From assembly GCA_964234715.1 (NCBI GenBank), contig OZ174276.1: a stretch of DNA of 64,000 bases, one strand, 5' to 3'. Origin of the DNA: Podarcis melisellensis (lineage: Eukaryota). The notes under the pieces are model-generated. The model searched no databases and was not told where the DNA came from. It worked only from the letters and a program-made list of their open reading frames with translations. Each line of letters opens with the position of its first letter. Position 1 is the first letter of the stretch. This document shows, piece after piece, positions 17,576 through 53,350 of the stretch. A program made the position numbers and the translations under genes.

Positions 17576-20500
17576 TCTCTGGTAGGGAGAGGGGAGAAGG
17601 GGACTCAGTGTGGAACACATGTTTTACATGCTGAAGGTGCAAGAATAAATCCATGACTTCTCCAATTAAAAATTATTCTCAAGATGTAGGGCTGGAAAAT
17701 ATTGTCTGCCAGAGGCCCTGGAAAGTTACTGTCAATCAGAATAGACTACACTGGGCTAGATAGATGGGTGATATGACTCAGCATACTGCAGCTTTATATA
17801 CAGCAGGAAAGATGACGTGGAGACAGCTGGGGAGCTTCATATGTTCAGTGAAGTCTTTTTCATTATTGTATCTGTTGCACTCAGCTGAAGAGCATAGTAC
17901 TGTATATGAGTACAAATATTTTTATAATTACCAAAGTTGGTGGGAAAGCAGTTGTGATCAAAGCTGAATAAAGAAGGTAAAGGTGGTGACCATTGTCAGG
18001 AAAATGGTTATGTGATTGTACTGCTTTAGGGTCAACTGTGTCTGCTAATTGTATCTCTATGAAGTATGCACTTTGGGGAGGAAAAATATGGTATGGTGGT
18101 CCTTGCATCATTTCACAGAACTCATAGTATCTGTGATACTGTGGATATCCAGCTTTCTGAGCTGCCATTTGACTTCCCAACAGCATTTCCTGCATCTAGA
18201 ATCTCTACCAGTGCTTAGAGACAAATGAGGTGATGTATGTTAAAGGACGACCAATTAATAAGTAATACATCATTTCCTGTTAGCAAATATATATTTGAAC
18301 AAGCACTGTCATAACTACATGTGATTTCTGGTTTTGACTGTTTCTGATCATTTTGGAAAACTTCATTTATTCTTGGACAGATTTCTTAAACTCATTGAAT
18401 TAATTTTCTTAAATTAATGGAGAAGTTGTTTGGAATTTCATGAATCGCACACTAGAAAAAGAAAGCCCCAAATCTTCTTGATACTTCACAGTATGTGAAT
18501 TATTAATTTAATTGTTGTGAAACTTCCAATGGGGATGAAATTGTTTTTGCAGAAAATAAGCCTGGTGGTATTGAAAATAACATGGGATTTATTTATTTGC
18601 GTACATTTCCCCCCCCCCCCTTTGATAAGTTTTATTCTATGGAAATGAGAGATTGACAAGCATTGGCGCTAAAGCAAGCTGCAGTGCAAAATTCACATGC
18701 CTAGCTCTGCCAATATGCTTCAATCCTTTTTTATGTTTATTTATATTCTTTCTAATTTAGTGCTGATGAAAGGTGCTGGATTGACAACACTGGAGGCTGA
18801 AGCCCTCTATTTATCCACAGAACAGATACAGCACGGGCGGCAGCAGTGCAGGCTTCCCCACACTGCCCCCACCAATGTGCCTCATCTCTGTCCTGGAGGA
18901 ACCACCTCTAGAGGTGAGAGGATAGATTGGTCTCCATGACCCATACAGTCCTTGGCCTTTCTGTTCAGATTGCCAACAGAGTTACCAGCTTGTAGTGGCA
19001 GACTTAGACACCCTTCAGCCAGGAAGTGCACCAAGTTCATCAGTGTGTTTCACTGCAGCTATTTGGCAGTGATAGGTTCCACACTGATGTGAGGAGTTGT
19101 ACTGGAACCTCGATTTACTGAATGATGACTAACTTGCACTCTTCAGGGTTCAAAGCTTGTCTTAGAAATGAGAAAAGAGTTGCCCAAACTTTAGCAGCTT
19201 TGATTTCAGTCAATAGTCTGATTTCCAGCTAAACCTCCTATATTCTTATTCATGAGCTGAGATCTAACTGAACTGAGATGCAGCTATAATTTGAATATCT
19301 AGATAAGCCTCCCATTCATATGGCTCTGGTTTTTGTTTTGTTTTTATAGATAAACTATTGGATAATATAGCAAAGCTTGTTTTGTTCACAGTGAACAGTA
19401 CAACTCAAATATAACTAACACAAAAAGTAAATATAATCAGCTGAAATGTCTCGCAGCTTGCCTCTGAAAAACGTACACATGTATTTTCATTTTGAAATGA
19501 TAAACATTTGTAGGAATATGCTGCCTTCTTAACTTGGTACAGTAGTATGTCATAAAGCACCTTTTGAGAGGTTAGTAGACACATTACGGGGCTCTGCTCC
19601 ATGAATGAGCTGACTTATCTTCATTGTTAAGGCCAATTTAAATATTATTTTAAGCATTGTAGATATGAGAATCACTTACACACTTCTGCAGGCCGTCCTC
19701 CAATACTGCCACTTCTCAATTGTTGATATAAATATATCATACATGGTCAGATTCATATGCTTAAGATTTTATTTCCAAACACTGTCTTTTTGGATAAGAG
19801 CATTAGGGTAAACATTACACAGTGTATCATTGGCTGTAATATAGTGCAAGCTGTATTTGTGAAAGCTTCCACCTTTTCATTACATAGCTATAAACACACA
19901 AATTAGCTGCAAACGTTGGACTTGTTCATAGATAAAAGCAGAGCACAATGTCCACTTCTGGATGCTAGCTGTTAACAGGCTTAGGGCCAGTTTACCCTTC
20001 AAGGAGCTGTGTTCGCTGCANNNNNNNNNNNNNNNNNNNNNNNNNNNNNNNNNNNNNNNNNNNNNNNNNNNNNNNNNNNNNNNNNNNNNNNNNNNNNNNN
20101 NNNNNNNNNNNNNNNNNNNNNNNNNNNNNNNNNNNNNNNNNNNNNNNNNNNNNNNNNNNNNNNNNNNNNNNNNNNNNNNNNNNNNNNNNNNNNNNNNNNN
20201 NNNNNNNNNNNNNNNNNNNNAGTGTGCATTGGATTACAACTTTAGAATTTATAGTAATTCACAATACTTTTATGAGATACCACAAGATTGGTATCTTTAA
20301 GCAGAGGCTTGACAACCATATGTCAGGAGTGCTCTGATGGTGTTTTCCTGCTTGGCAGGGGGTTGGACTCGATGGCCCTTGTGGTCTCTTCCAACTCTAT
20401 GATTCTATGATTGGTTCTTTAATTTGTGGACAGACCAACATACTACCCCACTCAAAGTTAGTATTTATATGGCACTTTTTCATAGTAGTTAAAGTAATTC

Positions 20501-23500
20501 ATATATAATATTATGGCAGTAATTCTTATATCACTCTGTAAAGTGGGTGTGAGGATCCTGTGGCCCTCTAGATATTGCTGGAAGCCATGCAAGTTGTAGT
20601 TCAACAGTATATGGGGAGCCAAAGGTTCCCTACTCCTGCTGTAAAGTAAACCATCATTTCCCCTACATTGCATGACAGGGCAGTGGGAATTTAGACTGAG
20701 ATAGTGGATTGTCACAGCATCACATGACAAGGGCATTGGCCCATCCCATTGGCTCCAGCATCCCACAATGCAAATAGGCAGCTCTAAAAAATTCAGTCTT
20801 TGTTGTAATTTATACTGCATTTCTTTCCTCAAGATCCCTGTGATGAGACTTGCCAGTTCTCCATACGCTTTGTTTTCCCTTCTGAAAAATTAGTTCAGGT
20901 TGAGAGTAATATGTTCTGATGGAAATTATTACCAAAGAACATCATAGGCATCCCCGGTACAACGTGGTTTTACAAACAGTGACACTGAAGTACAATTTTG
21001 AGTGGTAATCCCGCAACAGATCTTGCTCTTGTGAAAGGTTTCGTGTTATTCTCCTGCAAGACTTTTGAGAAGAACTGTGATTGCACAGCTGCATCACTCA
21101 AAGCCTTCTCTTAATAAATGAAAACACAGTGGATTGTATCCAGTGCTGTCCTTACATTTACAGAAAGCTGTTTGATCCAGTGGGAATTTCCAAGAACGTA
21201 AAGGAGGGAGGGGATTTTTTTCTTATTTCCTCTTCCACTCCCAGTGCTCCCTTCCAGTCTGCTCTAGGTGCTTAGGGTACACACTTGAACAGTGCAGGAC
21301 ATGATATGGGGGCTGCAAGGGAAAGGGGACATTTAGGGGAATTACCTCCCTCCCCATTCTATGCATGGAAGTCTTTGAGGGATCAAATCACCTTTTGTGA
21401 ATAGAAGGACCACTGGATGGACAACTCACAGTCAGTCTAGTATCCTTTTTAGCACATCTGTGGTTAGGGAGGAGTAGACTCACTGTTCCTCAGTAGAGAG
21501 ACCATATACTTCCAGTTATTAAGTTTTGAGGGACAAATAAGGGAAGGTTCTTGTTCTCGTGTCCTCCTTTTGGACTTTTTAGGGAATCTGATTGCCCACT
21601 GGTGCAGGGAAATGGTGGGTTTTCGGCGTTTGAGTATCAAGGTACCACTTTACTTCAAAGGCAGAGCACACCATTCCAAATGTGGGACTGCTGCTCTTTT
21701 GCTGCATGTTTGCTGTAAGCATGTCATCTGAAATACACACTTCGGATGTGCACATGTATGCATTGTGTAAAGAAGCACTAGACTAATGGGCTTTCAGCAG
21801 GTCAGTTGCATATTTTGAAGTTGTCCATAAGCACCTGAATGAAACAACAAACACAGCCACCACCATGATACCCTACCTGCAGATAGACATATTAATAAAC
21901 AAACAAAAAAGAGTGGGTGTATGACTTTTTGTCTACCAAGATACTATTCCGACAAGCTTGGCTGAACAGGTAGAATTTCCAAAGATCCGACAGTTACAAA
22001 TAAGTAACGTGCATTTTACACGATTTTCTTTAACTTTTAAAAGGAGCTTTTGACAAATACTGCCCTCTGTTGATGACTTGAAGTCACATAATTAATAGAA
22101 AAGCTTTCAGGAAACAACTGTTGTCAACCATGTTAGATGAGCAGCAAAGGTATTGTTTTCATGTGTTTTTCCAAATTGATGGTACTCAACAGCTTCCTGT
22201 GTATTTCTAGGATAAATTGAGGAATATATTTTAAAAGGGGGAAATCAGCAATGTGCTTTGTGCCATAATACATATACTGGTGCTCCTAAAAGATCTGTAT
22301 TTTATATTTTGTGATGCAGAAGTAGGACTATCGTGATATGTATGTGAGCAAAAGAGACAGTATAAAACATTAATGCTTACCTAAATGAACATTGTGAATG
22401 ATAGGATGGTCAGATTATTTGTGTTCTGTGTTTGTGGTGAAAACACTTAATCATACAGTGGAGTTTGAATTTATTTGAGCTTAATAACTTGAGGGAAACT
22501 CTAGAAAGTGTGAAAGTTTCTCCTGAACTGCTAACTATATTGTTTCTTCCTTTTGTGCTAAATCTCAGTCTATGACCTGCATGCCATGCTTCCGTTCATG
22601 TGAAATCTGTACCAACTTGAAATAACCCTTGTGTTTAATATTATTTGTGTGTGGTCAGATATTATTTGTGTGGTCATAGAAAGTTTGCAGAGGGGACCAT
22701 GTGCATCAGATTCTGCACATTAATGCATCCAGTAGGGGAGATAGTTTCCATTGTTATCATTACCTTAGGCAGCTGTGCATTTCAACCAGTACCATAATGA
22801 GTAGGATTTCCCCCATCAAAGATCATAATGCACTGATACACTATGCAGTGCCCAAACAAACATTCATCAAAATGGCAATATATGTCAATAGGAATCAAAA
22901 CCCTTATGGGATAGAGATATATTGAGAAGCTCTGTGTTCTCATATTCTCATACTAAGCATAACTGCTTGTTAATTACACAGTTTGTGGAAGCACACTTCT
23001 TATGTTCTTACACCAGCAGTGTAAGAATGGATCTACCAAAGGCCGTTTTATTTTGGTAACATGGGGCTTTCAGAATGCATTCATTGACCTGCTAAGCGGT
23101 ATGCTACAGACCCAGCAGCTTGTCTGTGTTGCTGTTTTTGTTATGCACTGAACACTAGAGCAGTGATTCCTGTGTGCCAGTTAAGCTCATTTCCATTGTA
23201 CGCTAAAATGTTATGTTTCATAGTTGTGACTCATCTTAGGAAGACTAGGGGACTGGGCCAAAGAGCATCTCTGTTGTGTTTTGTCATGTGTACGTGATTG
23301 TTCTCACTTGTTTACAGGCTCTCCCTCTCTACCAGATAAGTATCGTCATAATCGGGAGCTGATGATGTTATTACCGATGCACCGAGACCGACCTAGCAGT
23401 GCCATGTACCCTGCAGCTATCATGGAAAATGGACAGGTAACGATTTCAGTATTGCCGTTTTTTCTGTGCCAGGACATGAAATTAGCAAACAGATCCATTT

Positions 23501-26500
23501 TCTGGACAGGAAAGGACAAATGTTTTGGAAATGGAAACTAACGGAAAGGAGGAACTTGCAGGTTACCTTACTTGGCAGGATAACTGTCCCCAGTCAGCTA
23601 GCCCACCTTTCCTGTCTGTCTTCCCTTCAGAAAAAGAGAGCGGGGGGAAAGAAAGGGGTTCTGAATCCCATAGCTAGGATTCATGTGGGTGAGGTGAGTC
23701 AGGAAGGGAGATGGCTTTAGTGATTCCTGGCCAAAGGAGTAGCAGAGTAGCCAGCTGGTGGACATTTCAAACAGCAGGCCTCAGCACACAGGGCTGGCAA
23801 GGCTGGGATTACCCTAGTCATAATGCACTAAAAATCCCAGGCAAAACTTATTGACAATAACTGAGGGCAGACAGGCCATGCCTTTGACCAGCACCTCTAT
23901 CATTGTACCTGTCAGCTTCCTGAGCAAATTCAATAAAAGAAATTGCAGCTTCTGCACCCTGAGCATGTGCTCCTCTCAGGGAGATCTGTAGAGCAGTCAC
24001 TTTGGGGGGGTTGGAGGGTGTTCCTGCTCATTCCAGTCCAGTCTCAGTCTTGGGAGGTCCTTCCAGCAGAGGAATCAAGTTATACCCCAACCCCTGTCTC
24101 TTACAGGTGGAGGGGGCTTAACTGGAAAGTTCTCCAATGCCCTCCTTACTCTCCCTAGAGCATGATATTTATGGTAAAAAAATTATTCTGCCTTCATTCA
24201 AATTATTATTATATAGTCATAATAACATAGGCACAGAGATTGCCGTTATAACATAAAACAAATGTAAACAATCAGATATCTTGTGAATCTTATTGGAGAT
24301 ATCAAACAGCATAGTTACAAACTGTTGTTTAAGAAGTGCAAGTATTTGTTGCCTTTCTTCTCTCTTAGCACCCAAACTTCCAGCGAGCCTTGCTCCAGCA
24401 AGTGATTGGACCGTGCAAACCCTGCAGCGATCCTAACCTTTCTGTTGCTGAAAAAGGTATTCCGTGCCCTATTTTATATTATTTACTTATGACACTTATT
24501 TCAGGCATTGCTTTTTGCTGCTTTGCTGGATCCACAATCTACAGCTAGCGCTGAATGCTGTAGCATGGTTGCTGACATGAGCAAGACTCTACTCAGAGAT
24601 CTGCATTAGTGGGTGAAGTTCAAGGTGCTAGTATTGGCCTATAAAGCCCTAATCACTTGGAAGCCAGTTTTATTTACAGGATCTCCTTACTTCATATGTA
24701 CCCACTTGACCTCTCTTGACCCACTTGCAGAACTTGTAAGAAATTGCTTTTTTAGCACAGCAGGACCTAAACTTTTGCACTCCCTGCCAATTTACATCAG
24801 GTTGATTGGTGGCTTAGCTGTGTTCTTTCTGATGCCTGCTTAAAACTTTTTTGTTAAGCTAAACCTATCCAGATGTACATATATTGAATAAATTGTTTTC
24901 AACCCTTTTTTTTTTTTAGTTTGCTGCTGGTTTAAATTCTATGACCCGCCCTGAGACCTCCGGGTATAGGGCGGTATATAAATTCAGTAAATCAAATAAA
25001 TAAATAAATAAATTATTTTTAAAATGTTTTAATTACTTGTTTTTAACTACTTTGCTGATAATTTTAATATTTCTTGTCAGCCCTTAGAGGTTTTGTTGCA
25101 GTCAAGCAGTATATAATTTTTTGTTAAATACTATTAATTAATTAATGTTATTGTCTCATTTTATGTTCATTCAAAGTGTTCTTATCACTATAATCTCTTA
25201 AAACCATGTGTATTTAGAACAAGCAGTTAATCACACAGCAACTACCCAATCCATATATACTCCTAGCAGAATATATACATTTGTGAGTCATGTTTCAAAT
25301 ATGACAATCTCCTTCCTGCATAGAGATTAGCTACATAAAGGGAAAATTTCAGTTATGAAGCAGCACTTTGGAAAGGTCAGTAATCCATAGGCCAGGGGTG
25401 GCCGGCTCTCAAGAGACGGCAATCTACTTTCAGAATTAAAAACTGGCAGTGATCTGAGTCAGCTCTAAATTGTTGAACTTTTTTTAGGGAGGAGAAAGGC
25501 CCCATTTTTAGTGGTTAAAAAACAGCTTTTTTGGAGGGAAAGGTTCCATTTTTGTGAGGGTTAAGGGCAAGGGACAAAGGGGTAAAGTCACTCACAAAAA
25601 GATCGCTATGGATGAAAACAGCAGCACAGAGAAAGCTCTGTCTTCCCTTCCAGAGATCAAACAATGAAGGGCAGTGCGGCGGGGCAGAGCAGGAGTCAGT
25701 TTTAGGGACACTAAGGAAAGGGAGCCAGAGATCGACCGCGATCTACCGAAACCTCACAAGGATCTACCAATAGATCACAATCGACTTGGACATCCCTGCC
25801 ATAGGCTATTGGAAGGGGAGTTGGTGTATATATCAACTGCACAACATATACAGCTGAAGATGCTTGGAATGCTCTCCCTAACCGGCTGAAAGCACATGTT
25901 TGGGTAAACCTGGAGACCTGTCACTTTCCCTTTTTAACACTGATTTTTCTTGACAGTAGAGTGACATTGAACACCTTAAAGCAAAATCTTTTCAATTATA
26001 GCCTCTCTGCTGATGAATCTAATCACTGAAGACAAACTCTGCAGCCGATGGTTTGGCCACCACAGGACAGCAGGGACTTTCAAAGATAGTTTAAGCATGA
26101 GCTAAGCCTTTATTTGGGATAAACCATCCAATATCAGAATTGCACATTAGGTTTTCCAAGCATTTTAGTCTAAAATACGATAGACACAGCAGGGAGGAGG
26201 GTATCGAATTTGCCATCAGTTAAGATATTCCATGTTTTGTTTCTGGTTTTCATGTGTATACTATACAGGTGGTGACCTTCAGATAGATAGTGATCAGTTT
26301 AGAGCAGTTTCAAAGCATGCATACAACTTGCTCATCCAGTGGCAGCAGCAGGAAGTCTGTACGTATAGGCTGAGTGAAAATGATGCCTGACTCAAAAACT
26401 GTGGATTTAGGTTCTCAGTGAGAACAGAATAAGAAGGTTTGTTAAACAAATAGTGAATGGTAGCTTCATAACAAGGTGAATGCTGGGATGGGAAACATAA

Positions 26501-29500
26501 TTAATTCATTGTGGGGGTTATAGGCCCCACATAAACTATAATCCACAGCATTCTCCTCTACAACCAAGGCTGATGTATACTTTTTGCCAAGTCTTGTGTC
26601 AGAACTCCCCTGTGGGTGAGATTCTGTTTGATGTTTGTCAGTAAGATCAATGTTAAGGAAAGGTCTGGGCAAAGTCTTGGTGATTGTTTTCATTGCTATA
26701 GTTTTTTTTTAAGCCTCTTATTTTCTGTTGGACTGCTACCATGAATTTTATAAGTGTGTTAACTTTATCAGGAAAATGCAACTCTTTTCTACTTGTTTTG
26801 TCTCATTAATGTATAAGGAATTTTGTTTTGTTTTTTGTTTTAAAAAAAGGTTTGGGACCAGAGGAAAACAAACTTACCTCATCTTGGTCATCGCGGCACA
26901 GTAACAGGCTCTGTTCTGCATACTGAAATGTCTGTTCCTTGTTCTTTGTTACTGCTTCCTTCATCCTGCTTTTTTTTTAAAAAAAATCTGTAGTCTAAAA
27001 TATATCTTCTTGGTCTCCTAATAAGGCTAATCTATCTAAACTGCTTTCCCATTTCCAGTGAAAGGTCAGCAGAGTAAGTTGATTGCTCCACCTAGTGGTT
27101 ACAAGGCAGACAGCAACCTTTTGGGAGATAGGACTCCCAGCAAGAATCCAGTTCTGCTCCTGCCATTGGTCGCTACTGCTCTCGCTGATCTTTCAGGTTT
27201 TCTCTCTGAATTTCTTCTGTGACAGAAAAGGAAAAAATTAGGAGTTAATAATAGTCCTCTTTCCCTGTGGCCATGTTCCCCTTTGTTTCCCTACACTCCC
27301 CTGAAGGAGTTGTGGTGATTGCTCCTTTAAAGAAGGCTGCTAAGGCAGAATGGGGGAATTCCCCAAAATATAAAAAGCTGTACCTATTGTGAATACATTT
27401 TACACCTTGGAAACTGAATTCACTGACTCCCTTAAAACCCCTAGCATGTATTGTCCTATTTCTCTCTTAGTTTCTGAAAATCTACTTCCCAGAGGTGGGG
27501 ATTCACAATTAAAGGACACCACTGAATGCAGATTGAACTATGCAATCCATAAAACACATGAAGCCCCCACCCTGCCCATTAGAGCAGCACGAACAGCCTC
27601 TGTTTTTATCTAAACATCTGTAAGATAAGCTCTTAGATGAGCTCTTAGACCCATCAAACCAGGATACAAGTTGCACATGTCAAACCCTACTAAAAATCCA
27701 TTGCTCAGCTGCCTTCATAGCAGATGCTACTATGGATACCTCTCAATGTGCTTCTTGAGCCCTTGTAGCAGATGTGGTCACCAGATGCACTTAATGCTCA
27801 AACACTGGGATGTAGACACTCTTATGTCAGCCTCTCCATCGCGTCATATGCAGGAGGCAAGCTTCTCAGGGAGGATGCCCTAAAGGACATCTTAGTCTAG
27901 ATGACAAGTGGAAGGTATTGCTAGCATACAAGACGGACAACAAGCGGCAGAATAGGCACCGTTCTCCACATTTCTACAATCAGTCCTTTTAGAACTACTG
28001 ACGAGTTCCTGGTCAGTTAAAAAAAAAAAGCCGTATCTCCCCAACTTATCACCTAATACATTTTGGAGAACTCTTGTACACCACCAAAAGCCTCATCTCC
28101 TTAGCCCTGGAAAGATTTCAGAAAGCAAATCTGCAGTACAGCCTTAGCCAGTGTGGTGTAGTGCTTAAGAGCGGTAGTCTCGTAATCTGGGGAACCGGGT
28201 TCGCGTCTCCGCTCCTCCACATGCAGCTGCTGGGTGACCTTGGGCTAGTCACACTTCTCTGAAGTCTCTCAGCCCCACTCACCTCACAGAGTGTTTGTTG
28301 TGGGGGAGGAAGGGAAAGGAGAATGTTAGCCGCTTTGAGACTCCTTAAAAGGAGTGAAAGGCGGGATATCAAATCCAAACTCCTCTTCTTCTCTTCTTAG
28401 CCCTCATTCACGCCAATATAATGGTGGTGGCACATGTCCTTGGCCTCTGCGTCTCAGCAACTCCTTGGGTGAAGCACCATGCTTGGCCCCTCCAGTGGGC
28501 CCTACTGCCATTTCCGAAAAACATTGCCCTCAGCAGGCGCCTTCACATCAGGCTGTCACCCCAGCTCCATCACAGCCTGCAATGGTGAACTGACCTAGTC
28601 ATCTTGAGGAGGGACTCCCCATTCCAGGACTCCCAGCAAATGATAATACCTTCAGATGCCAGACTCATCTGTTGGGGCACATTGCAGGGATCTCTCAGTC
28701 CAGGGCCAGTGGTCTGCAGCAGAATCCTCCATGAGCATCAACTGGCTGGAGCTTTGAGCCACCCACGTAGCCCTTCTGCACCTTGCACAACATCTCTCTC
28801 TCTGGAACATGTATGTACATCTGGACAAACAATACCAAAGCCAAATGAAACATCAACAGGCAAGGTTCAGCTTGATCCCCGAATCTGCAGCAAGAAACAA
28901 CCCTCCTCCTGGACTAGGCAGGGATCAAGATTCAATCAGTCACAACTACTGAACACATATACGGACTTAAGAACACTCGGACAAACCAGGCAGAGTGGAG
29001 CCTGAAGCCCCACTTGTTTTCCAACTACTCCAGCAAAGCTTCAGCCAATGCAAAATCAATCTCTCTATATCTAATAGGGATTGCCAACTTCCACAATTCT
29101 TCACCAGGTTTCACACCCCATCAGGCCTGGAGCACTCTGCTCTCCCCCTGGCCACAGGGTCAACTCTATGCTTTCCCTCCAACTCCCATACTCCCATGGG
29201 TCCTCAGGAAAATCAGGGAAGAAAAGGCAAGAGTGCCCCTCATCACTCGGTTCTGGCCACATTGTCCTTGGTTTCCGCAGGTACTGAGCCTAGCACTCTC
29301 CTCTCTGTGGCGACTCCCCCAACTACTGGACATGCTAGTTCAAGGTCTGATCCTTCACCCAGATCCTGCCTGGTTGCATCTGACTGCATGGTTTCTGACC
29401 AGAGATGGCTGACAGATGGATCTCACTCCAGACATCATAGATATTCTGCTGTACTGCGGAAAGTCTTTGACTCTACATATCTACCAATTCACCTGGAAAT

Positions 29501-32500
29501 CTTTCCTCCTGAGGTGCTCTACTGAAGGGTGTAAAGTCAATAACCCTGGTATCTACCATCTTAGAATTCCTTCAAGATGACCAGAGAAAAGGCCTGAAGC
29601 CCAGTGTGCTAAAACAACAGGCAGCGGTGGTCTCCTCCATTCTCTCAAGGCTGCACTCCCCTTCCTTCTCCTCTCACCCACTCCTGAAACACTTTCCCCA
29701 GGGAGCATCTCTTAAATGCCCTCTGACTTTCCATAGATTCGCCTCCAGGGAGCTTCACAGGGTTCTCTCTGTGCTTCAACACCCTCTTTTTTTTAACCTC
29801 TCAGCAAGGTGGCTCCTTTCTTTGAAAATGGTCTTCCTCATCACAATCACCTCAGCCTGCAGAGTCTCCAAGTTGAATGCTCTTTCTGTTGCCAAACACC
29901 TCTGTGTCTTCCATAGAAGCAGAGTAGTGCTAAGGACTGAGACCCCCAAGTGTCTCCTGCAGATTCCATCTCCGGAAGGAGATGGTGCTTCTCTCCTTCT
30001 GTCCATCCCTACTCCATCCTCTGGAAAAGGCCTGACATTCCCTGGACATCTGCAGAACCCTGAAGATTTACACTGGTGGAACTAAAGCCCATAGGCTAAC
30101 TGAAACCCTGTTTGTATCCTTCCACCCACCCTCAGCAGGCAGGAAGATGTCCTCTTCTACCCTTTCTAGGTGGATCAGGGCATGTATAGCGCTGGCCTAA
30201 GAGGTGCAGTGGTCTTCAGCACCCCATGGCTCACTCCACAAAAGCCACAGCAGCCAGGGCTATGTTTTCCTCTCCTGCTTTTCTACAGGAGACCTGCAGG
30301 GCAGCTACTTGGGCAGCACCCAGGACCTTCAAGCACTGCCACCTGGATGCCTACGCACCCTCAGACGCAGCTTTGGGCAGAAGGGCTCTGCAACAGGTCC
30401 TCCCGCTATGAAGCTGCACTCTCTCCTTAGAAAGATTAGCTGCTGTGTGTCCTGCTGACCCTTTCACTGGAAATGGGGGAAAGTACAGTTGTACCTACCT
30501 GAAAGGTAGCTTTCCATTTCTTGATGAAAGGCCAGCAGACCCTGCCCTAGTTGGTTTGGCTGCAGGATTCTTGTCATTAGCACAGTCACATTGTCATTAG
30601 GAGGTAGCATGTTTTTTTCTTCTTTCTATTCTTACACTCCTGGCTGTCGAGCTTGGCGAGTCTGCATGCTGGGAGTCCTACCTCCCAAAATGTTGCTGTT
30701 TGCCTTGTGACCACTAGGTGGAGCCATCGCCCCACTCTGCTGACCTTTCACTAGGAAATGGAAAAACTACACTTCAGGTAGGTACAACTCGTATTTTCTC
30801 GTGATCAAGAAGTGCACAGTTCTCTTACCACTCGCTGCCTTCAGAGCAGGACATAACCTAACAGCTTGGGGCCAGTCCCAAAACTCACTTGATTCAGTGA
30901 GTTTTAAAAGTCAGCCTTCAGTCCCATCAAATATTGCAGCATTACCCAAATTCAATCTGTTTCCATCCTTCAGCTGTTCCAGCAGCACCAAGCAGCTGGA
31001 GTCTGGACAGCGGAACCAGAGAGGCCTTGCCATTCCTGTCTACTCATGTTGGGAGCATCCTGGCCCCACCAGTACCTCCCCGAAGCCTGCCCCATGGTAA
31101 GGAAATGGCCAGTAGGTCTGCAGAAGAAATCCTGCACAAATGCCCAGTTAAACCATGTGAAAGCAAACAATGCCACCTGTTTGCCTTCTGAAAAATGAAG
31201 AAGGAGTAAAAGGAAGAGAAGGCTACACCAACTCTCTTGGCTGATGATTTCATAAATCTTTAAAAAACCAAAAAAAAGCAGTACTCTAAATGTGCTTTGA
31301 GACTGGAATTGGGCTTAAGAGTGATGTACACTAGCCCAGTGTCTTGCTAAAAGCTGTACAGTACAATTACATGCATGTTTACTCAGAAGTGAAGTAAGTC
31401 ACATTGAGTTCAATGGGACTTACTACAATTGCAGCCTAGGTTTAACAAATAAAACATTGAGCTCCAGTTATTGAAGATAAATTAAGGTTTCAGATATTTA
31501 ATGCTAAAGAGCCTGTTGTCTTGCCACGGGAGCCTTGATATGATAACTGTGTGTGTTACACTGTGTTGCTGCCTTCATTTGCTGTTTGTTGTTGTGTACA
31601 TTGAGTTACAATTTACCATGTAAAATAATTGGTTTCTAGGAAACTGACACTGCACTATCAGGACATATCTGTCTAACTAGCATCACAGGACATTTAAGAG
31701 TTGGAAATGCTATTTCTGACTTACTGCTCGCAGATAACTTTTTCCATTTATCTCATTTAAGGTCACTACTCGCTGCATTTTGATGCCTTCCATCACCATC
31801 TTAATGATGCCCCCCCAGCACTGCCTGCACGGACGCTACGTAAGGTAAAACTATATCTCAAATTGCAGAACCACCCTCTGATTCAGCCAGCATACTGAGA
31901 GCAATTCTGTAATCCACCTCTTTGTTTATTTATACTGATTTACTCTACTGTACGCCCTGTGATATTACCGGGAGATTTATCACCTTGCTAAACTTGATGA
32001 GGTGGGAAAGGGTGTTTCTCCTGCTTGCTTATTTAAAACAGTTAAAAGATCCTCAAGCTGTTATAGCAGTGTGTGGTAAGCCCGCATTTCCTGAGAGTTA
32101 GGGTACTCTGAAAGCAGCAAGGGGAGCCTTTTCAAAGCACTTTCCCTGATTGACTTTCAAAATGCTCTTCCTATTTAAGCATGGGTCTCATTTGAAAGCG
32201 TAGATCCATCCAGAGCCACCCTTTCCAAGCACTCTTCTGTACCTGCTCAAACAGGGAGAACAGAGTGCTTTGAAACCACATCTGTGCCAGCAGGAATTGC
32301 ACTTTCAAAGCACTCTTCTTGCTGCTTTGAGAATGGTCCATCCCCAAAGAAATATGGTCTTAATTCACACAGCTATGAGTACTCAAAAGGGTTTGTTTTT
32401 TTTAAGTTAAAGAAGCATTGGGAGGCCTCAGCTACTGCTTGAAAACTCTGAGGAAATTTTGCTCATCCACCCCATTTTCAGGGATTTCAGGAAACTGGCA

Positions 32501-34216
32501 GAATGTGCAGGTTGGTCTATGGTTGAGGGCAGTTAAAGTGTCTGGAGGTAAGGGTGGGGAAATGAAAACAGAAGGAATTGGCCTCCTTAATTCCCCAACA
32601 GCTATTGTATTCCGGAGGAAAGCTTCTGATTGGCAGGATGTGCTCTTTGAAGTTGTCCTCCCACACTGTTCACCTTACATCCGGCAGCTATATACAGTAA
32701 CAGAACAGCAACCAGCCTCAATCCTGAGCCCTTTAGTACTATAGCACAGCACAGGTTTTAGAAGGGCAGAAGTGAGAAGAAAAGTAGCCTCTTGCAAACC
32801 CCAGTACTAAAAGTTAAAAGTGGACATGGAGCGGCACGTGGTACCTGTAAAATCTGTTGCTATGTACATGCATTAATACTCAAAATATTCATCCTGCTCT
32901 TACTATGTGAAATAGTAATGATAGAGAGCTCAGCTGCACAATATGGATAGGGGTTGAAAATCTGTTCTAAATTGCATTGTTGCTGCAAATTAAAATTAAC
33001 TTTGGAAGTATATGTTTAGTAAGTGCTTTGATTTTGGAATATCTGAGTATACCAGGGTAGCAGACAATACTATGTAGGGGAGTATTTTATTTATTTTGTT
33101 TATTTTATATGCCAGCCTTCATCCGAGGATCGCAGGGCAATTTACAATATAAAAATACATAACTATAGGCTGTATTGGATACAGTGACTGATGCAAAGAA
33201 CAGGACTTCTATGTATTGATGGCAATTGTGTAGAAGAGGAAATTTTGATAGCTGCACCATCTTAAATACCCTACACTTTCTATAATTAAAGGCAGATGAA
33301 TCTTGCCCTCCTTCCTATCTGATCACTTTATTGTTGTAAATATCAAGAAGGCAAGAGTTAGCCACCACACAATTGCGATTATTTTGGTTCAGTTTAATTT
33401 CCCTGTACCTCAGGGTATTATTACACTGCGGGTGTTTCCATTTGGAAAGCTAGAGAAGGCAGAGTATACATATTTCCTAGCCATCAACTCTTCCCTTTTC
33501 TTGCGAGGAATCCTATTCGGAATAAGGGAATTTCCCTTTAAAAAAAGGAAACGACAGCTATGATATTTGTTTATATTTGAACACAAAATCTATAAAACAG
33601 TAATTAATGTTCTGTGATCGGTGTGGGACGAATTAACCACGGAAGTGCAGAAATATTTCTTTGTATGTTTTGACATACGTATGAATGCTCTGTGTCGTTT
33701 TTTAAACAGTCACCACTTCATCCGATTCCTGCATCACCCACAAGCCCCCAGTCTGGCCTGGATGGAAGCAACTCTACCCTCTCAGGCAGCGCAAGCAGTG
33801 GCGTCTCCTCGTTAAGTGAAAGTAACTTTGGGCATTCATCCGAGCCCCCGCCTCGAACAGACACTATGGATTCTGTCCCTAGCCAGGCGTGGAATACTGA
33901 TGAAGACTTAGAGACACCCTACCTTCCCGTCAGGTATAGTCTCTCAGAGCCTGATGTCCTGGAAACACTCAAATCCCAGCCGTGCCGAAGCCACTCTGCC
34001 CCATCGGGAGTCATTCCTCAGGACGCTGTGGACCCTCCAGCTCTACCCCCTAAACCATATCACTCCCGCCTTCCAAACATGGAAAACGAGGAGGGGATGA
34101 TCTTGGAAGAGGATGAAAAACACCGGGTGCTACATCGCAAAATTTCCCAGCCAACTAGCGGTGTGAAAGAGGAGCAAGCCAGAGTAGCGTGGGAGCATGG
34201 CATCAGTGAGCAGTAG
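228..34216 (+). CDS. DOCK3: Dedicator of cytokinesis 3 (Rac GEF), 3' part, multi-exon; 5' exons lie upstream of the window
   Basis: 20 GT-AG exons join in consistent phase into [36 protein letters not shown]...GVIDAAVNGGIARYQE...AWEHGISEQ*, matching the recalled human DOCK3 C-terminal half; synteny with MANF/RBM15B/DCAF1. Confidence 0.97.
810..938. mobile_element. Palindromic ~130-bp hAT-like MITE family copy
   Basis: CCCTCCAGATGTTG..GGACTACAACT core with inverted ATCTGGAGGG; related copies at ~20550, 40285, 47820, 48710, 56348, 57590, 58506. Confidence 0.75.
2260..2353 (+). CDS. DOCK3: DOCK3 exon ([31 protein letters not shown]), start of DHR-2
   Basis: cattag|AAC ... ACA G|gtaag. Confidence 0.95.
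3150..3298 (+). CDS. DOCK3: DOCK3 exon (EAAFTLLLYCELL...IIHYFNKGK)
   Basis: gacag|AG GCT ... GGG AAG|gtatg. Confidence 0.95.
3529..3615 (+). CDS. DOCK3: DOCK3 exon (SWEFGIPLCRELAIQYESLYDYQSLSWIR)
   Basis: tttcag|AGC ... CGG|gtagg; 87 nt. Confidence 0.95.
3934..4038 (+). CDS. DOCK3: DOCK3 exon (KMEATYYDNIMEQQRLEPEFFRVGFYGRKFPFFLR)
   Basis: cacag|AAA ... CGG|gtaaa; 105 nt. Confidence 0.95.
4275..4366 (+). repeat. L2-type 3' stem-loop with (AAT)n microsatellite tail
   Basis: ACTGCCCT-loop-AGGGCAGT then ~17 AAT units; similar tail at 24942-25012 (+) and ~33085-33150 (-). Confidence 0.75.
4725..4866 (+). CDS. DOCK3: DOCK3 exon (NKEYVCRGHDYERLEAF...ILQCDAQ), followed by U12-type donor
   Basis: tgtag|AAC ... 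CAG T|gtatccttt. Confidence 0.94.
4867..5960 (+). other. U12-type (minor spliceosome) GT-AG intron
   Basis: 5' site GTATCCTTT is the U12 consensus; TTCTTTGAC branch-like motif at ~5937-5945, about 15 nt before AG, with no polypyrimidine tract between. Confidence 0.88.
5961..6127 (+). CDS. DOCK3: DOCK3 exon (YLQIYAVTPIPD...GPKDKENEFK)
   Basis: ttgcag|AT TTG ... TTT AAG|gttga. Confidence 0.95.
7058..7144 (+). CDS. DOCK3: DOCK3 exon (SLWIERTTLTLTHSLPGISRWFEVERREL)
   Basis: ttgcag|AGT ... CTG|gtaac. Confidence 0.95.
7717..7896 (+). CDS. DOCK3: DOCK3 exon (VEVSPLENAI...GVIDAAVNGGIARYQE), DHR-2 nucleotide-sensor Val loop
   Basis: ttgcag|GTT ... GAG|gtaaa; 180 nt. Confidence 0.96.
9083..9166 (+). 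CDS. DOCK3: DOCK3 exon (AFFDRDYITTHPGDAEKITQLKELMHEQ)
   Basis: ccccag|GCT ... CAG|gtatc. Confidence 0.94.
10263..10321. repeat. (TTTC)n microsatellite
   Basis: Direct tandem repeat. Confidence 0.95.
10669..10861. mobile_element. hAT MITE
   Basis: TIRs TAGGGTTGCCATA / TATGGCAACTCTA; 8-bp TSD GTCTAGCT/GTCTAGCC. Confidence 0.85.
11149..11265 (+). CDS. DOCK3: DOCK3 exon (VHILGVGLAVHEKFVHPEMRPLHKKLIDQFQMMRSSLYH)
   Basis: aatag|GTA ... CAT|gtaag. Confidence 0.95.
12473..13226. mobile_element. Non-autonomous Tc1/mariner-pogo DNA transposon
   Basis: TIRs CCGTATTTTTCCGT.TATAAGAC / GTCTGATACACGGGAAAATACGG, with TA on both sides. Confidence 0.85.
13416..13537 (+). CDS. DOCK3: DOCK3 exon (ELPALDKLSPACSGTSTPR...IKLVHRH)
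   Basis: ttacag|GAG ... CAC AG|gtatt. Confidence 0.93.
13571..13693. mobile_element. hAT MITE
   Basis: TIRs TAAGGTTACCAGA / TCTGATAACCTTA; perfect 8-bp TSD TTCTATAC. Confidence 0.9.
15114..15249 (+). CDS. DOCK3: DOCK3 exon (PLNMLGTVRHSSSSLSSH...EDMYHMQ)
   Basis: ccgtag|C CCA ... CAG|gtacg. Confidence 0.93.
15310..15581. mobile_element. hAT MITE (GC-rich)
   Basis: CAGGGC...GCCCTG ends; perfect 8-bp TSD CATTTAAG. Confidence 0.88.
15630..15860 (+). mobile_element. Old MIR-like CORE-SINE
   Basis: TTAGGCAAGTCAC..CTCTCAGCCT..CATCTACAACATGAGAATAATAA core and AT-rich tail. Confidence 0.6.
15895..16530 (-). mobile_element. Probable solo LTR / LTR-like insertion
   Basis: Abrupt GC-rich block in an AT-rich intron, begins TGTTAG and ends CTAAGA, minus-strand AATAAA at ~16016-16021; no clear TSD. 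Confidence 0.45.
16565..16646 (+). CDS. DOCK3: DOCK3 exon (ASPSTSSLSSTHSAPSQMINSAPPSAR)
   Basis: ttcctag|GCC ... CGG G|gtaag. Confidence 0.93.
17466..17573 (+). repeat. LINE/SINE 3' stem-loop with (TTA)n microsatellite
   Basis: GCCCAGAGTGGCTGGGG..CAGCCAGATGGGC then (TTA)n. Confidence 0.7.
17590..17785 (+). mobile_element. Degenerate tRNA-derived SINE with CR1-like tail (Squam2-like)
   Basis: CTCAGTGTGGAACACATG head and CTGGGCTAGATAGA tail; related pieces at ~9795-9912 (+) and 46725-47340 (-, split by a DNA-transposon insertion). Confidence 0.5.
18761..18913 (+). CDS. DOCK3: Putative DOCK3 cassette exon, 51 codons (VLMKGAGLTTLEAEAL...CPGGTTSR)
   Basis: Long pyrimidine tract + tttag acceptor, AG|gtgag donor, 153 nt, phase 1-1, open in the DOCK3 frame. 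Confidence 0.65.
20021..20220. other. Assembly gap (200 N)
   Basis: Run of N. Confidence 1.
20296..20412 (+). mobile_element. 5'-truncated CR1 LINE 3' end
   Basis: GGGGTTGGACTCGATGGCC...TTCCAACTCTATGATTCTATGATT octamer tail. Confidence 0.85.
23318..23436 (+). CDS. DOCK3: DOCK3 exon (GSPSLPDKYRHNRE...AIMENGQ)
   Basis: ttacag|GC TCT ... CAG|gtaac. Confidence 0.94.
24369..24456 (+). CDS. DOCK3: DOCK3 exon (HPNFQRALLQQVIGPCKPCSDPNLSVAEK)
   Basis: tcttag|CAC ... AAA G|gtatt. Confidence 0.94.
24520..24860 (+). mobile_element. L2 LINE ORF2 3' remnant
   Basis: Degenerate LQL..NA.A.LLT...DLH..FKVLVLAYKAL motif. Confidence 0.65.
25393..25798. mobile_element. hAT non-autonomous element
   Basis: CAGGGGTGGCC...GGACATCCCTG ends; perfect 8-bp TSD CCATAGGC. 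Confidence 0.88.
27045..30796 (+). mobile_element. Degenerate DIRS1-like tyrosine-recombinase retrotransposon
   Basis: Left ITR 27045-~27142 inverted to right ITR ~30667-30796; ICR 30452-30538 complementary to both termini; TTT ends, no TSD; remnants of RNase H (~28810-28870), methyltransferase-like (LYAFPP) and YR (LKMVFLITITSACRVS; AHSTK..CRAATW). Confidence 0.92.
28146..28398 (+). mobile_element. tRNA-derived SINE (Squam3-like) nested in the DIRS element
   Basis: Box A TGGTGTAGTGC, box B GGTTCGCGTCTC, L2-like 3' stem-loop, (CTT)n tail. Confidence 0.85.
30974..31096 (+). CDS. DOCK3: DOCK3 cassette exon (AVPAAPSSWSLDSG...APPVPPRSLPH)
   Basis: cttcag|CT GTT ... CAT G|gtaag; 123 nt, phase 1-1; PSSWSLDSG and PPVPPR also occur in the paralogue DOCK4. 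Confidence 0.88.
31762..31844 (+). CDS. DOCK3: DOCK3 exon (GHYSLHFDAFHHHLNDAPPALPARTLRK)
   Basis: tttaag|GT CAC ... AAG|gtaaa. Confidence 0.94.
32065..32375. mobile_element. Old palindromic MITE
   Basis: ~85-bp imperfect inverted arms (AAAGCAGCAAG / CTTGCTGCTTT etc.). Confidence 0.55.
33710..34216 (+). CDS. DOCK3: DOCK3 last coding exon (SPLHPIPASPTSP...PPALPPKP...AWEHGISEQ*)
   Basis: aaacag|TCA CCA; TAG at 34214-34216. Confidence 0.96.
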   Translation, partial: SPLHPIPASPTSPQSGLDGSNSTLSGSASSGVSSLSESNFGHSSEPPPRTDTMDSVPSQAWNTDEDLETPYLPVRYSLSEPDVLETLKSQPCRSHSAPSGVIPQDAVDPPALPPKPYHSRLPNMENEEGMILEEDEKHRVLHRKISQPTSGVKEEQARVAWEHGISEQ

Positions 34217-43041: not shown

Positions 43042-46000
43042 GTGAGTCGCCGTCCCCGCGCGGATGGTCTGGGCAGCGGAGGGCGGAAGGGGCCCCCGGG
43101 GCTTCGCAGAGGGAAGGAGGGAGCGCGCTGCTGGGGTGGCCAGGTGGCAACGGCGCCTCCCCTTCACGAACACGGCCTCCCCTTGGCTTGGAAACCGGAG
43201 GCGAGTCTTGCCTCAGCCGCTGCTTCCACGCTTCTTTCCCCGGCCCGGTGCCGCTTTCCTCTCAACGGGAGGGACGCTGGACCCCCACATCGCAAGGCTG
43301 CCATGGGGAGGGAGATGCCCTTGCCAGCCAGCGAGTCTGTTTGGACCAAGAAGGCTATGATCAGTGCGAGTGGCTGCGGGAGCTTTGGAGAAGAAGGGAG
43401 AGGGGGTTCAAGTGTCCTGCCTGCCTGCTCTGTCGCTGTGAAAACCATTGAGAAGATGCAGCTGCCCAAGGGGTTTCCCCAGAAGCTGCTTATATAAGGA
43501 GTAGGGATAGACCCACATGTCTGGGTGTAGCTTTGAGGTCACCATTACTGCAGTGGGGGCTCATGGTAGTTGTCAGGGTCCTGCTTCCATAACGAAGAAG
43601 TGGGGTTGATCCGTTGTTGCTGCTAGGGAAGGAAGGTTAAAAGGATTGTTCCAGGTTTTGGGCTGTATGCTCCTGCCCCTGAGTTGGGAGCGTCCAGGGA
43701 AGCCCCCCTCAACTTCCTGCTGCTGGGAACTGTACACTTGACACTAGTGTGTGGGTGGGGGCCTTTTCTGCTGTGGCACCCTAGCTCAGGAATGTCTTTC
43801 CTTCTGAAATTCCTTTGCTCCCACAGACTACTGGCATGCAGGCACTAGGTGGAAATCAGACTGCCTGCTCAGACTCTGGGGCATTTGTGCTTTTTATGTT
43901 TGATATTAATGTGTTCCCTTTACCCCCCTTTGGATAGGTGTTTTAAACAGGTTATGCTTTATTGTGACCTGCCCAGGAGTCCTAAGATGTGGGTTATAAG
44001 TTGTCTAAACAATCTCTTACCTCATTCCTTTCTGTAATCGTGACCTTCAGATTGATACTAAGTAGGATATATGCTGTGAATTATATCTACAGTGTGATAT
44101 AGTCTCTATAATTGTAATGGCATGTATGGGTCCTCCCTTGTATGACTTAGTAAATGGTTACACCCACAGGCTGAAGGTCTCCTCTACAGTACTTATGTTC
44201 CTGGTTACACACTAATGCAGAAGACTCTGTTCCAGGATTTCTAATTGTTCAACCCTTAACTGAATGAGCAGCAGCTTGAGGAGCTGCTTTTATTTATGTA
44301 TATTTGTTTCATGACTTGACTGAAGCCAAAGTTTGTTTCTGGAACGGACCAGTTTTCAATACAAAGTTTCATCCTTGAAACACAAGGAATAATAGTGTTT
44401 TTAATAATGTGCAGAGTGCTGCTAATTCATGGTTGATAACACACAACCATTCTGGTTGTATTATTTTCCATAGAATTTCTGCATTTCAGAAACCATGCAC
44501 ATCTCAGCTTAGTCTTTTGATCTTAACAAAGAGAATATGGCTCAGCCAAGGTAAAAACATCTTATAAGGCAGAGGTGATGCCCCAGTGCAGGTGCCTGAT
44601 ACCGTCCACCTCCCCACCCCCCAAATTCTCCATTAATTTTGGCAGTGGCAGCAAAAAAAGGTATCACATTGGGGTGGCTAGATCTAGCATCCCACTGAGA
44701 ATGCAAATTGCTCCTACCCCAGTCATTGGATTAAATATTTGATAACCAGAGAAGTGATGACACTCCTCCCCCCGCTCAGCTGGTCTTCATGAATCAACTG
44801 GGGAGACAGGTTGTGTGCAAAACTGTGGCCACATCCAACAATGCCCAAAGATTAATGTGAAAAAGGGTAGCCACCCCTGTTGTAGCTAAGAACGGATTTG
44901 GACTGCCATGTTGTATGAAACATGCCCCTTCACAAGATAGTCTGCTGTCACAAATATGCCCAGTAGTTCATCTTCTACACTAGTGTGTTGGCTTTCGATC
45001 TGCCATGCTTAATTCATTTTGTGTAAGCTAAAAAGAAGAGAGGAGAATTTCGGGGAAGAAGTTCAATTCAGCATTATATCTCCTTCACTTTACAGTGTGT
45101 GTTTCATTCTTGGGAAGATTCTACCAGAGCCTAAAGGAGAAGAATGTTGAGTTCACACCAAACAGTATTGAAAAAGAACTTTTAAAATCCTGTAAAGAAG
45201 CAAAAGGCAAAGAGAACCGTCTGGTAAGTATTTGTAACTGGGTTATGTATTTAAAACATTTTTACCTCATTATTCACCTGAAAAGGCAGTTTGTGCAACT
45301 AATTAAAACGAGAGTCCCTCTGCACAGGCTTAGGTTTTGTTTTTTTAAATGCCAGGTGACAGTTGAAGGAGGGAATGTCCATTGCAGCTGGTCAAGTTCT
45401 GGTCGTAATTGGAATAAAAAACATAACTTAAGACAAAGAGGAAATAGTGGATGCACCTGTCTGTTTGTATCTATTTCCAACAATTTATAAATGGGTTCAC
45501 ACTGTAGTTTCTAAGCGGCCTGCAATAATGATACAGAAGAGATACAATCAGTTCAAATTAGGCATTAAAAACTTGCTTAATGTGCTGGCTGAAATAAAAA
45601 GGGCTTCACTAAGCACTGAAGGTTTAGTGGGGAAGAGGCCTATCTGATCTCAGCCAGGAGGTTGTTCCATAGAGTTGGGCCCTCAATACTAAATGCACAG
45701 CTTCTTATAAGACACCTGTATTGCGCTGACAAAGTATTGCGCTCAAGCAAGCACCACTGAGATTGTTATGAGAAATTCTTATTTAATAAATTTAGAAAAG
45801 TGTGTTGCAGTCATCCAACTTAGATGTAAGTGGGGCATATGTAACAAGGCGTAGACCTGTTTTTTGTTTTGTTTTAAAGAGTGCAGCTGCCACACAAGCC
45901 TGTGCAGAAGTCCTCTAACAGTAGTCACCACCTGGGCATCTGAGAGCAATGCTCTTTCCAAGAGGCCTTCCAAACATGGACCTGGTTTTTCCAAGAGCTG

Positions 46001-51949: not shown

Positions 51950-53350
51950 CCCTTAAAGCTCAGAGACCAGTTGTTTGCACGTGTGCGCGATTGCCGGTTG
52001 CTCCCTTCTTCGGTCTAACAGCCGCTCGTCGGAGGCGGCGCGCTTTGACCGAGAGAGGGAAAGTGGCATCCGCTTTACTTCTACTTAAAGAAAAGGGAGA
52101 GGAGCAAAGGAGGGGGGAAAGCGCTGTCCTTCCTGCTCTCACTTGCTATGCACTTTCTACTCCTCCCTCAGGCTGAGCGGCAGGTAGGTGCCGTGGAGGC
52201 GGGAAAGGCGGCCGGGAACACGGAGGGGCTTTGCTCCTCGCCTCCCCGTCCTCTGGCGGGCGCGAGCAGGAGGGGCTTTCGGGCGGCGGCCGCGGCGTCC
52301 AGCCGGAGCCATTACGGACGCGGCCCGTCGCTCGGCTGGCTCGGGGCGGGGTCGCGGGCTGATGACGTCGTCGGCGCGCACGGCGCGGCAACTGGGCAGA
52401 GCCGCCTTCGCTCGTTCCCTTTTGTCCAAGATGGCAGCTGCCGCCAGAGGCGCCTCCTGAATCGCGGGCCCCGGAGCCATGAAGCGGGCGAGCGAGCGGG
52501 ATTCCAGCCCGGCGGGGTCCGGGGGGACGCGGGGCGCCTCCTCGGCCAAGAGGCCCCGCGAGCGGGAGCGCGAGAGCAGCGGCGCCAGCGGCGGGAGCAG
52601 CAGCCGGCGGGGCCCGCACCGGAGCTCGGGCGCCTCCTCCTCGTCGTCGTCCGCCTCCGCCTCCGCCTCGTCGCGCAGCGGCCGGGACAAGTCGGCGGCG
52701 GGAAGCTCCAGCTCGCGCAGCCACCGCGGGGAAGAGCGGCCCGGAGGCGACTCCAACCACCGCGGCGCCGCCTCGTCCAGCGCCAGGAGCAGCAGCAGCA
52801 GCAGCAGCCAAGCCGCCTCCGCCGCGGCGCCGCCGCCCCCGTCCTCGTCCTCGTCGTCTTCTTCGCGGGCGCTGGGGGCCGCCAAGGCCAAAGTGCCTCT
52901 GGCCGCCGTGGTCGCCCCATCTTTGCTGCTGGGCGGGCCTTCGGCGGTGGCCGCGCCGTCGCTGCTTTTGGCGCCGGGGCTCGGACTGACGGCCGGGGTG
53001 GGGCTGGCCGGGGATCCCCCCGGCTCCAGCGAGTACAAGACCCTGCTGGTGAGCGGCCTGGGCCCGGCCCTCCCGGACCAGCTTCTGGAGGACGGTCTGT
53101 TCCGCCAGTTCCAGAGGTTCGCTAGCGGCGGCGCCAGTGACATTAGCGTCAAGCTCTCCCATACCCCCGAGCTCGGCCGCGTTGCCTATGTCAACTTCAG
53201 GCACCCGGCCGACGCCCGAGATGCTCGAAGGCATGCCAGAGCCCGGCAGCTTCTCCTCTACGATCGCCCCCTCAAGGTGGAGCCTGTGTACCTGCGAGGG
53301 GGCAGACGAAGCCGCACGCCCCCACCTACCCCGTCCCCTGAACCCATGGC
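51950..53350. promoter_or_regulatory. CpG island / RBM15B promoter
   Basis: Very high GC/CpG; E-box CACGTG ~51978, GC box, CRE-like TGACGTCG ~52363, YY1-like CAAGATGGC 52427-52435. Confidence 0.85.

Follow-up and report, generated by a model that had tools for sequence, protein, structure and literature searches.

The question raised by a 64,000-nucleotide stretch of Podarcis melisellensis DNA (assembly GCA_964234715.1, contig OZ174276.1; hereafter the window) is what occupies positions 27045-30796, a 3.75-kb segment in an intron of DOCK3 that includes a nested short interspersed element (SINE) of ~250 nt. The boundaries of this segment had been proposed by an earlier interpretation of the letters alone (the sequence-only reading), and they were recovered both by a repeat scan and by blastn. 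With a probability of about 0.93, the segment is one old, fixed and non-functional copy of a DIRS1-like tyrosine-recombinase retrotransposon, lying in sense orientation within the intron. It has a complete set of cis-acting repeats, complementarity to its own circle junction, TTT at both ends, no target-site duplication (TSD) and remnants of gag, RNase H (RH), methyltransferase-like (MT-like) and tyrosine-recombinase (YR) genes in the DIRS1 order. The element is one more member, now decayed, of a type that has been described from lizards before, and an ordinary genomic fossil.

Terminal repeats and the circle junction

DIRS1-like elements are recognized by inverted terminal repeats (ITRs), two internal complementary regions (ICRs) that have the 3 bp of a circular junction in common, a right extension (rE) and NTT at both ends (PMC3266345). 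In the window, the repeat scan finds the ITR arms 27045-27142 and 30667-30764 as an inverted pair of 98 nt at 87%, blastn aligns the arms over 99 columns with 88.9% identity (E 3.4e-30), and a global alignment of 27045-27142 with 30667-30765 has 88 matching and 10 mismatching columns and a single gap. Terminal direct repeats are absent from the repeat scan, in which the sole 'direct' repeat is the one between an ICR half and the right ITR. The outer 28 nt of the left ITR (27045-27072) are paired a second time, by the left half of the ICR. According to the repeat scan, ICR positions 30460-30477 are perfectly inverted relative to 27048-27065, while 30487-30513 and 30511-30539 pair with 30763-30789 and 30736-30764, respectively. 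By blastn, these pairs form two complementary matches, one between 30452-30477 and the left start, 27048-27072 (96%, E 4e-4), the other between 30479-30539 and the right end, 30736-30798 (84%, E 3e-11). The rE itself pairs only with 30481-30513 and is not matched by the other ITR. The two ICR halves, ~32 and ~59 nt long, overlap in the AAA at 30481-30483, which represents the circular junction and is complementary to the terminal TTT at 27045-27047 and 30794-30796.

The relation between the ICR and a circular form of the element was examined by placing the element's final 61 nt in front of its opening nucleotides, with the TTT counted once, and by using 1000 shuffles as a control. The reverse complement of 30452-30539 spans the entire artificial joint between right end and left start with a local score of 54, as compared with shuffle scores of 7.2 +/- 1.2 and a maximum of 14 (n=1000), and no interior window scored highly besides the ICR itself. 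The left flank, AAACTGC, and the right flank, TCTCGTG, are unrelated and share nothing beyond TTT, so that there is no TSD. The sequence-only reading had described a left ITR inverted near 30667-30770, a right extension with the end GTATTT, an ICR that copies the circle junction and whose parts meet at a shared TTT, and, for DIRS1 elements in general, integration without TSD, and each of these features is found here. The ITR/ICR complementarity, whose absence would in its view have spoken against a DIRS1 element, is present (E 3.4e-30 and 3e-11). Its term 'structurally complete' holds for the cis-acting repeats and fails for the coding part, which is deleted and decayed.

As a separate observation on the ITRs, the longest block that is perfectly conserved in both arms, at 27087-27101 and 30708-30722, contains CCACCTAGTGG, the reverse complement of which would fit the CTCF core pattern.

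These repeats can be placed in a replication cycle. An active element would be transcribed and then reverse-transcribed by its own reverse transcriptase (RT) and RH; the ICR, being complementary to right end and left start in their joined form, would act as the bridge or template by which the cDNA termini are restored and linked; and the YR would recombine the 3-nt junction TTT with a TTT of the target. Recombination between junction and target would leave TTT at both ends and no TSD. For DIRS1-like elements, integration is described as recombination of the 3-bp junction with an identical genomic triplet, without TSD (PMC3266345), and for DIRS-1 the ICR is experimentally essential for retrotransposition, the cDNA intermediates being mostly linear and single-stranded (PMC7192593). 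The steps of replication and integration proposed here follow published models and the Dictyostelium experiments, and the window displays all of their structural footprints.

Coding remnants and decay

A Pfam search of 20 stop-to-stop pieces of the element gave no relevant family, and hence none of the Phage_integrase, Dam or RNase H matches that the sequence-only reading had suggested looking for; it returned one sub-cut-off match to DUF6303 (E 0.01). A word-index protein search with the YR piece yielded 178 candidates, none of them significant, probably as a result of the length filter and of how far the copy has decayed. Since neither search told what the frames encode, an exhaustive HMMER run was made, in which the 190-residue piece 29513-30082 was searched all-against-library. 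It recovered 424 relatives at E <=1e-3, 59 at <=1e-10, the best with E 9.6e-29 at 52% identity. The best relatives belong to squamates and Xenopus, those named being predicted proteins of Rhineura floridana, Hemicordylus capensis, Thamnophis, Erythrolamprus, Crotalus, Ophiophagus and Xenopus tropicalis. Among 50 long relatives, the families found were Phage_integrase (15), RVT_1 (12), Phage_int_SAM_1 (12), RT_RNaseH (8), LAP2alpha (5) and Dam (2). The 1282-aa protein P0021 (XP_053138354.1, Hemicordylus capensis) carries LAP2alpha at residues 35-232, RVT_1 at 404-567 and RT_RNaseH at 675-746, and is homologous to the YR piece of the window at 990-1117. P0130 (KAE8576050.1, Xenopus tropicalis) carries RT_RNaseH at 68-160, a weak Dam match at 191-271 and Phage_integrase at 470-646. 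A third relative much used below, P0001, is XP_061443118.1 of Rhineura floridana.

When these relatives are compared with the window by tblastn, the remnants all prove to be on the + strand, where gag is followed by the RT C-terminal scrap and then by RH, MT-like and YR (Table 1). They are collinear with P0021 and P0001 and 31-59% identical per segment, with 22% in the weakest one. The gag remnant reaches a summed E of 1e-20 with P0002, and its aligned parts fall inside the Pfam PF11560 LAP2alpha matches of P0002, P0021 and P0024; LAP2alpha itself has been reported to descend from a DIRS1-like gag (PMC4495291). Residues 599-814 of P0021 align to 28418-29037 with a summed E of 2.6e-20, and this alignment includes its RT_RNaseH domain, which corresponds to ~28640-28852. 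Across the MT-like region, P0130 119-275 aligns to 28798-29244 and P0027 378-542 to 28984-29526; the rank-7 cluster of the Atlas has PF05869 in 11% of its members (score 0.89). The YR remnant has a summed E of 7e-57 for P0001 and 1.7e-51 for P0021, and its relatives carry Phage_integrase and Phage_int_SAM.

The RT region differs from this pattern. None of 150 relatives matches 27900-28400 at E 1e-3, and residues 196-598 of P0021 are unmatched. Relative to P0021, the shortening is confined to the RT region and amounts to ~0.8-0.9 kb, and the stretch 27898-28022 is best read as the mark of an internal deletion of that size. What follows it is the C-terminal scrap, which in a 600-nt search space is matched by P0056 253-284 (E 2.8e-4) and by P0009 340-372 (E 3e-3), proteins whose RVT_1 matches end at residues 266 and 354, respectively. 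A collinear alignment of the 'YLDD' region at 27971-28099, from a tblastn of 27850-28450, had an E of 1.4 and was dropped as noise. The sequence-only reading had stated that most of the RT was deleted and that frameshifted RH, MT-like and YR remnants followed the DIRS1 order. Both statements agree with the tblastn results, with a ~33-residue piece of RT left and a weak Dam similarity, and the gag remnants and the nested SINE are additions to them.

Decay is not limited to the deletion. Together, pol and YR contain at least 5 frameshifts and several stops and have no intact frame. Within the YR there are in-frame stops at ~30033 and ~30198; the arginine of the A-R-R-x-S-E-L box is kept, the arginine of HxxR is replaced by Lys, and the position of the conserved tyrosine is occupied by Cys, beside a one-residue gap. 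The YR frame ends ~45 nt short of the ICR; between the ICR and the right ITR with its rE lies a spacer of 127 nt. The copy is therefore immobile on its own, because its RT core is gone, its frames are broken by frameshifts and stops, catalytic positions of its YR are changed and a SINE interrupts its pol.

The search for relatives also touched on gene annotation. Some 'isoform' gene models of host genes carry DIRS-type parts or cluster with them (relatives P0002, P0003, P0199, P0202 and P0056). Examples are SMURF2 X1, OSBPL9 X4, SGTB X1 and TPC2 in the RefSeq set of Rhineura floridana, and the 'USP7-like' protein KAK9403183.1 in GenBank for Crotalus; P0002 has C2 and LAP2alpha domains as well as a YR-like tail. 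Such models are likely to be annotation chimeras or exonized transposon fragments. They call for caution, as DIRS-derived frames get into host gene models and several Rhineura RefSeq 'isoforms' cluster with DIRS gag or YR relatives.

Nested SINE, age, genomic setting and rival explanations

The SINE is set apart from the rest of the element by its abundance. In four runs with other species labels, summed word depth rises over 28110-28431, and nowhere else, from tens to values of ~40,000 (the thinnest run) or millions (the three others), and loose ends of other SINE copies occur at 28146/28148 and 28392/28398. The depth jump and the loose ends indicate that this is an extremely abundant SINE, and since pol homology is collinear across it, the SINE landed in the DIRS copy. 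ARAGORN and Rfam gave no match on 26500-31300, so that the SINE head was not recognized as a tRNA, and blastn at E 1e-3 found no second copy of the SINE in the window.

The left boundary of the DIRS copy is bridged by contigs of organisms B and D (that of F reaches 30 letters in, the bar being 31), and the right boundary by contigs of B, D, F and G. The contigs carrying the insertion differ by 2-4%. These bridging contigs imply that the insertion is older than the split of these species and is fixed. The nested SINE apparently also predates that split, with contigs reaching ~20 nt into it on the left and, in D and F, ~26 nt on the right, below the 31-letter bar, and with the right contig of B starting outside it. 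Between the two ITR arms, the Kimura two-parameter distance amounts to 0.11, or to 0.14 when the inner part is taken by itself; an assumed rate of ~1e-9 substitutions per site per year would put the insertion at some tens of millions of years ago, an estimate that is uncertain by a factor of two or more. Apart from the SINE, the element has the same depth as its flanks, and those assemblies contain no copy that is at least 90% alike. Small indels relative to the related species were seen inside the element at 30793, 30408, 29122 and 28677; after 30793, all four other runs have one T more in the terminal T-run, and in two runs an 8-nt insertion follows 30408.

The host gene was identified from an open reading frame (ORF) piece at 33710-34213 that matches a 'dedicator of cytokinesis protein 3-like' protein with 93% identity (E 2e-97) and closes with a stop codon. 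The two exons on either side of the element are 84-96% identical to the DOCK3-like protein, and these exons, on the + strand, bear out the placement in a DOCK3 intron given by the sequence-only reading. The intron, 24468-30972, is 6.5 kb long; the element, in sense orientation, makes up 58% of it, a fraction that can now be marked as transposon-derived, and ends 176 nt before the next exon. In the run X15 ('RNA?'), only thin contigs with a depth of 2.6-5 cover the flanking intron and the element alike, with no sign of element-driven transcription. Further downstream, the genes presumably correspond to the DOCK3-MANF-RBM15B-DCAF1 neighbourhood of the human locus. The window also has GC-rich islands at 42-44 kb and 52-54 kb, and a run of 200 N, at 20021-20220, that is an assembly gap or a masked stretch.

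Table 1. Features of the DIRS1-like copy and of its neighbourhood, in window coordinates
Feature	Position	Strand	Evidence or remark
Left ITR	27045-27142	+	begins with TTT 27045-27047; repeat scan, blastn, global alignment
Gag-like ORF1 (LAP2alpha-like) remnants	27392-27607, 27657-27791, 27799-27897	+	three frames; tblastn with P0002, P0021, P0024
Stretch without detectable homology	27898-28022	+	place of ~300 residues in relatives, including the RVT_1 core
RT C-terminal scrap	28023-28121	+	~33 residues: last ~12 of RVT_1 and ~20 more
Nested SINE, CTT-rich tail	~28147-28396		+ strand; direct repeat CTTAGCC at 28144-28150 and 28397-28403; interrupts pol
RT connection and RNase H remnants	28418-28678, 28674-28784, 28798-29037	+	three frames; tblastn with P0021
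MT-like (weakly Dam-like) remnant	~29014-29420	+	conserved block aligned to relatives
YR remnant	29413-29562, 29549-29938, 29946-30224, 30229-30405	+	four frame segments; HMMER, tblastn
ICR	30452-30539	+	two halves, 30452-30483 and 30481-30539
Right ITR	30667-30765	+	repeat scan, blastn, global alignment
rE, 31 nt	30766-30796	+	ends with TTT 30794-30796; pairs with the right half of the ICR only
Five 3'-terminal DOCK3 exons	23362-23436, 24372-24467, 30973-31098, 31761-31856, 33710-34213	+	291-aa DOCK3-like protein, 81-96%
ARMET_N exon (MANF-like)	45095-45230	+	E 3.8e-9
Intronless 923-aa ORF (RBM15B-like)	52479-55250	+	RRM_1 and SPOC

Several points weigh against the assignment to the DIRS1-like elements. 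The RT core, a defining gene, is absent, and the MT call relies on Dam matches of P0130 (E 0.024) and P0030 (E 0.011) that lie below the Pfam cut-off. As no Pfam domain was found directly in the pieces of the window, every domain call is second-hand, by way of the relatives. A single copy was seen, the window containing no other DIRS fragments, and the relatives include no named DIRS1 reference protein, just 'uncharacterized' or chimeric gene models. The absence of the RT is read here as a deletion within a member and not as evidence against membership. A variant of that explanation, which is unlikely, holds that the copy had already lost its RT when it inserted and, as a non-autonomous element that kept all its cis repeats, was mobilized in trans by the proteins of intact elements. 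It would account for the preservation of ITRs, ICR and rE next to the clean loss of ~0.8-0.9 kb of RT. However, a second copy with the same breakpoint was not seen, 27898-28022 being single-copy at a likeness of at least 90%, a threshold below which copies of this age would fall; the other genes are equally decayed, a state that a deletion after insertion explains just as well. If true, such a copy would show parasitism inside the DIRS order in a vertebrate. As to its family, it might be one not yet in repeat libraries.

That the segment derives from another tyrosine-recombinase retroelement, such as Ngaro, a PAT-like element or VIPER, is very improbable. RT, RH and YR are common to all of them, PAT-like elements also have an MT, and the protein relatives bear no family names; yet those elements have split direct repeats, in contrast to the inverted termini with an ICR found here, where the element also retains an MT-like remnant and a LAP2alpha-like gag. 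Equally slight is the chance that the copy has been co-opted by the host, either through insulator-like motifs borne by its ITRs or through an effect on the splicing of the DOCK3 exon 30973-31098, which begins so close to its end. Its retention in at least 5 species labels and the block perfectly conserved in both ITR arms would fit such a role, but between species the element diverges about as much as its flanks (~2.1% over 28419-31299 as compared with 2.6% over 26500-27358, in X5), so that it looks neutral, and no RNA record carrying the element was found. Least credible of all is a misreading of a chance palindrome, of a long terminal repeat (LTR) element of the Gypsy type or of a Crypton. 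The RH of DIRS elements does resemble that of Ty3/Gypsy (PMC3266345). Nevertheless, chance is ruled out by the E values of 3e-30 and 3e-11 and by the shuffle control, an LTR element by the lack of direct LTRs, of a DDE integrase and of a TSD, and a Crypton DNA transposon by the gag, RT scrap and RH remnants.

Comparison with known systems

The DIRS1-like copy in DOCK3 offers a textbook case of the ITR-ICR-rE architecture in a reptile genome, of small significance beyond annotation, and, as a shared insertion, it could be used as a phylogenetic marker among the species carrying it. Its occurrence agrees with the known distribution of the group: the 775 DIRS1-like sequences of Anolis carolinensis fall into 42 families (PMC3266345), and DIRS1-like elements are lacking in alligator, birds and mammals (PMC4350176), as the sequence-only reading had said in stating that they occur in squamates and are missing in mammals and birds.

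The closest parallels are AcDIRS1 and AcDIRS2 of Anolis carolinensis (Piednoel et al. 2011, PMC3266345), the likeness being judged by published dimensions and descriptions. Both have ITRs and a two-part ICR near the 3' end, without TSD, their genes are gag, RT/RH/MT and YR, and, like the window copy, they have an extension on the right only, of 26-28 nt (28 in AcDIRS2) as compared with 31 nt. Their ICR halves measure 39-40 and 58-60 nt, as compared with ~32 and ~59 nt, and AcDIRS2 shares with the window copy the TTT start and the AAA junction. In contrast, AcDIRS1 and AcDIRS2 are 5.9-6.0 kb long, with ITRs of ~162-166 nt, whereas the window copy, with 98-nt ITRs and a length of 3.75 kb including the SINE, lacks the RT core and has every ORF broken. 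The squamate and Xenopus proteins P0021, P0001 and P0130, which jointly carry LAP2alpha, RVT_1, RT_RNaseH, weak Dam and Phage_integrase, are open frames or gene models, some of them fused to host genes, unlike the window copy with its lack of an intact frame and of an RT core.

The founding member, DIRS-1 of Dictyostelium discoideum (Malicki et al. 2020, PMC7192593), follows the same ITR/ICR logic and integrates by a tyrosine recombinase. However, its host is very distant, its ORFs overlap and it is active in RNA interference mutants, whereas the window copy is dead; ITRs of up to 316 nt in DIRS1-2 are also far longer than those found here. Ngaro and PAT-like elements resemble DIRS1-like ones in having RT/RH and a tyrosine recombinase and in leaving no TSD, but they end in split direct repeats (A1-B1 ... 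A2-B2), whereas the window copy ends in ITRs accompanied by an ICR, and Ngaro lacks the MT. The traits of Ty3/Gypsy LTR retrotransposons, namely direct LTRs, a DDE integrase and a TSD of 4-6 bp, are all missing from the element.

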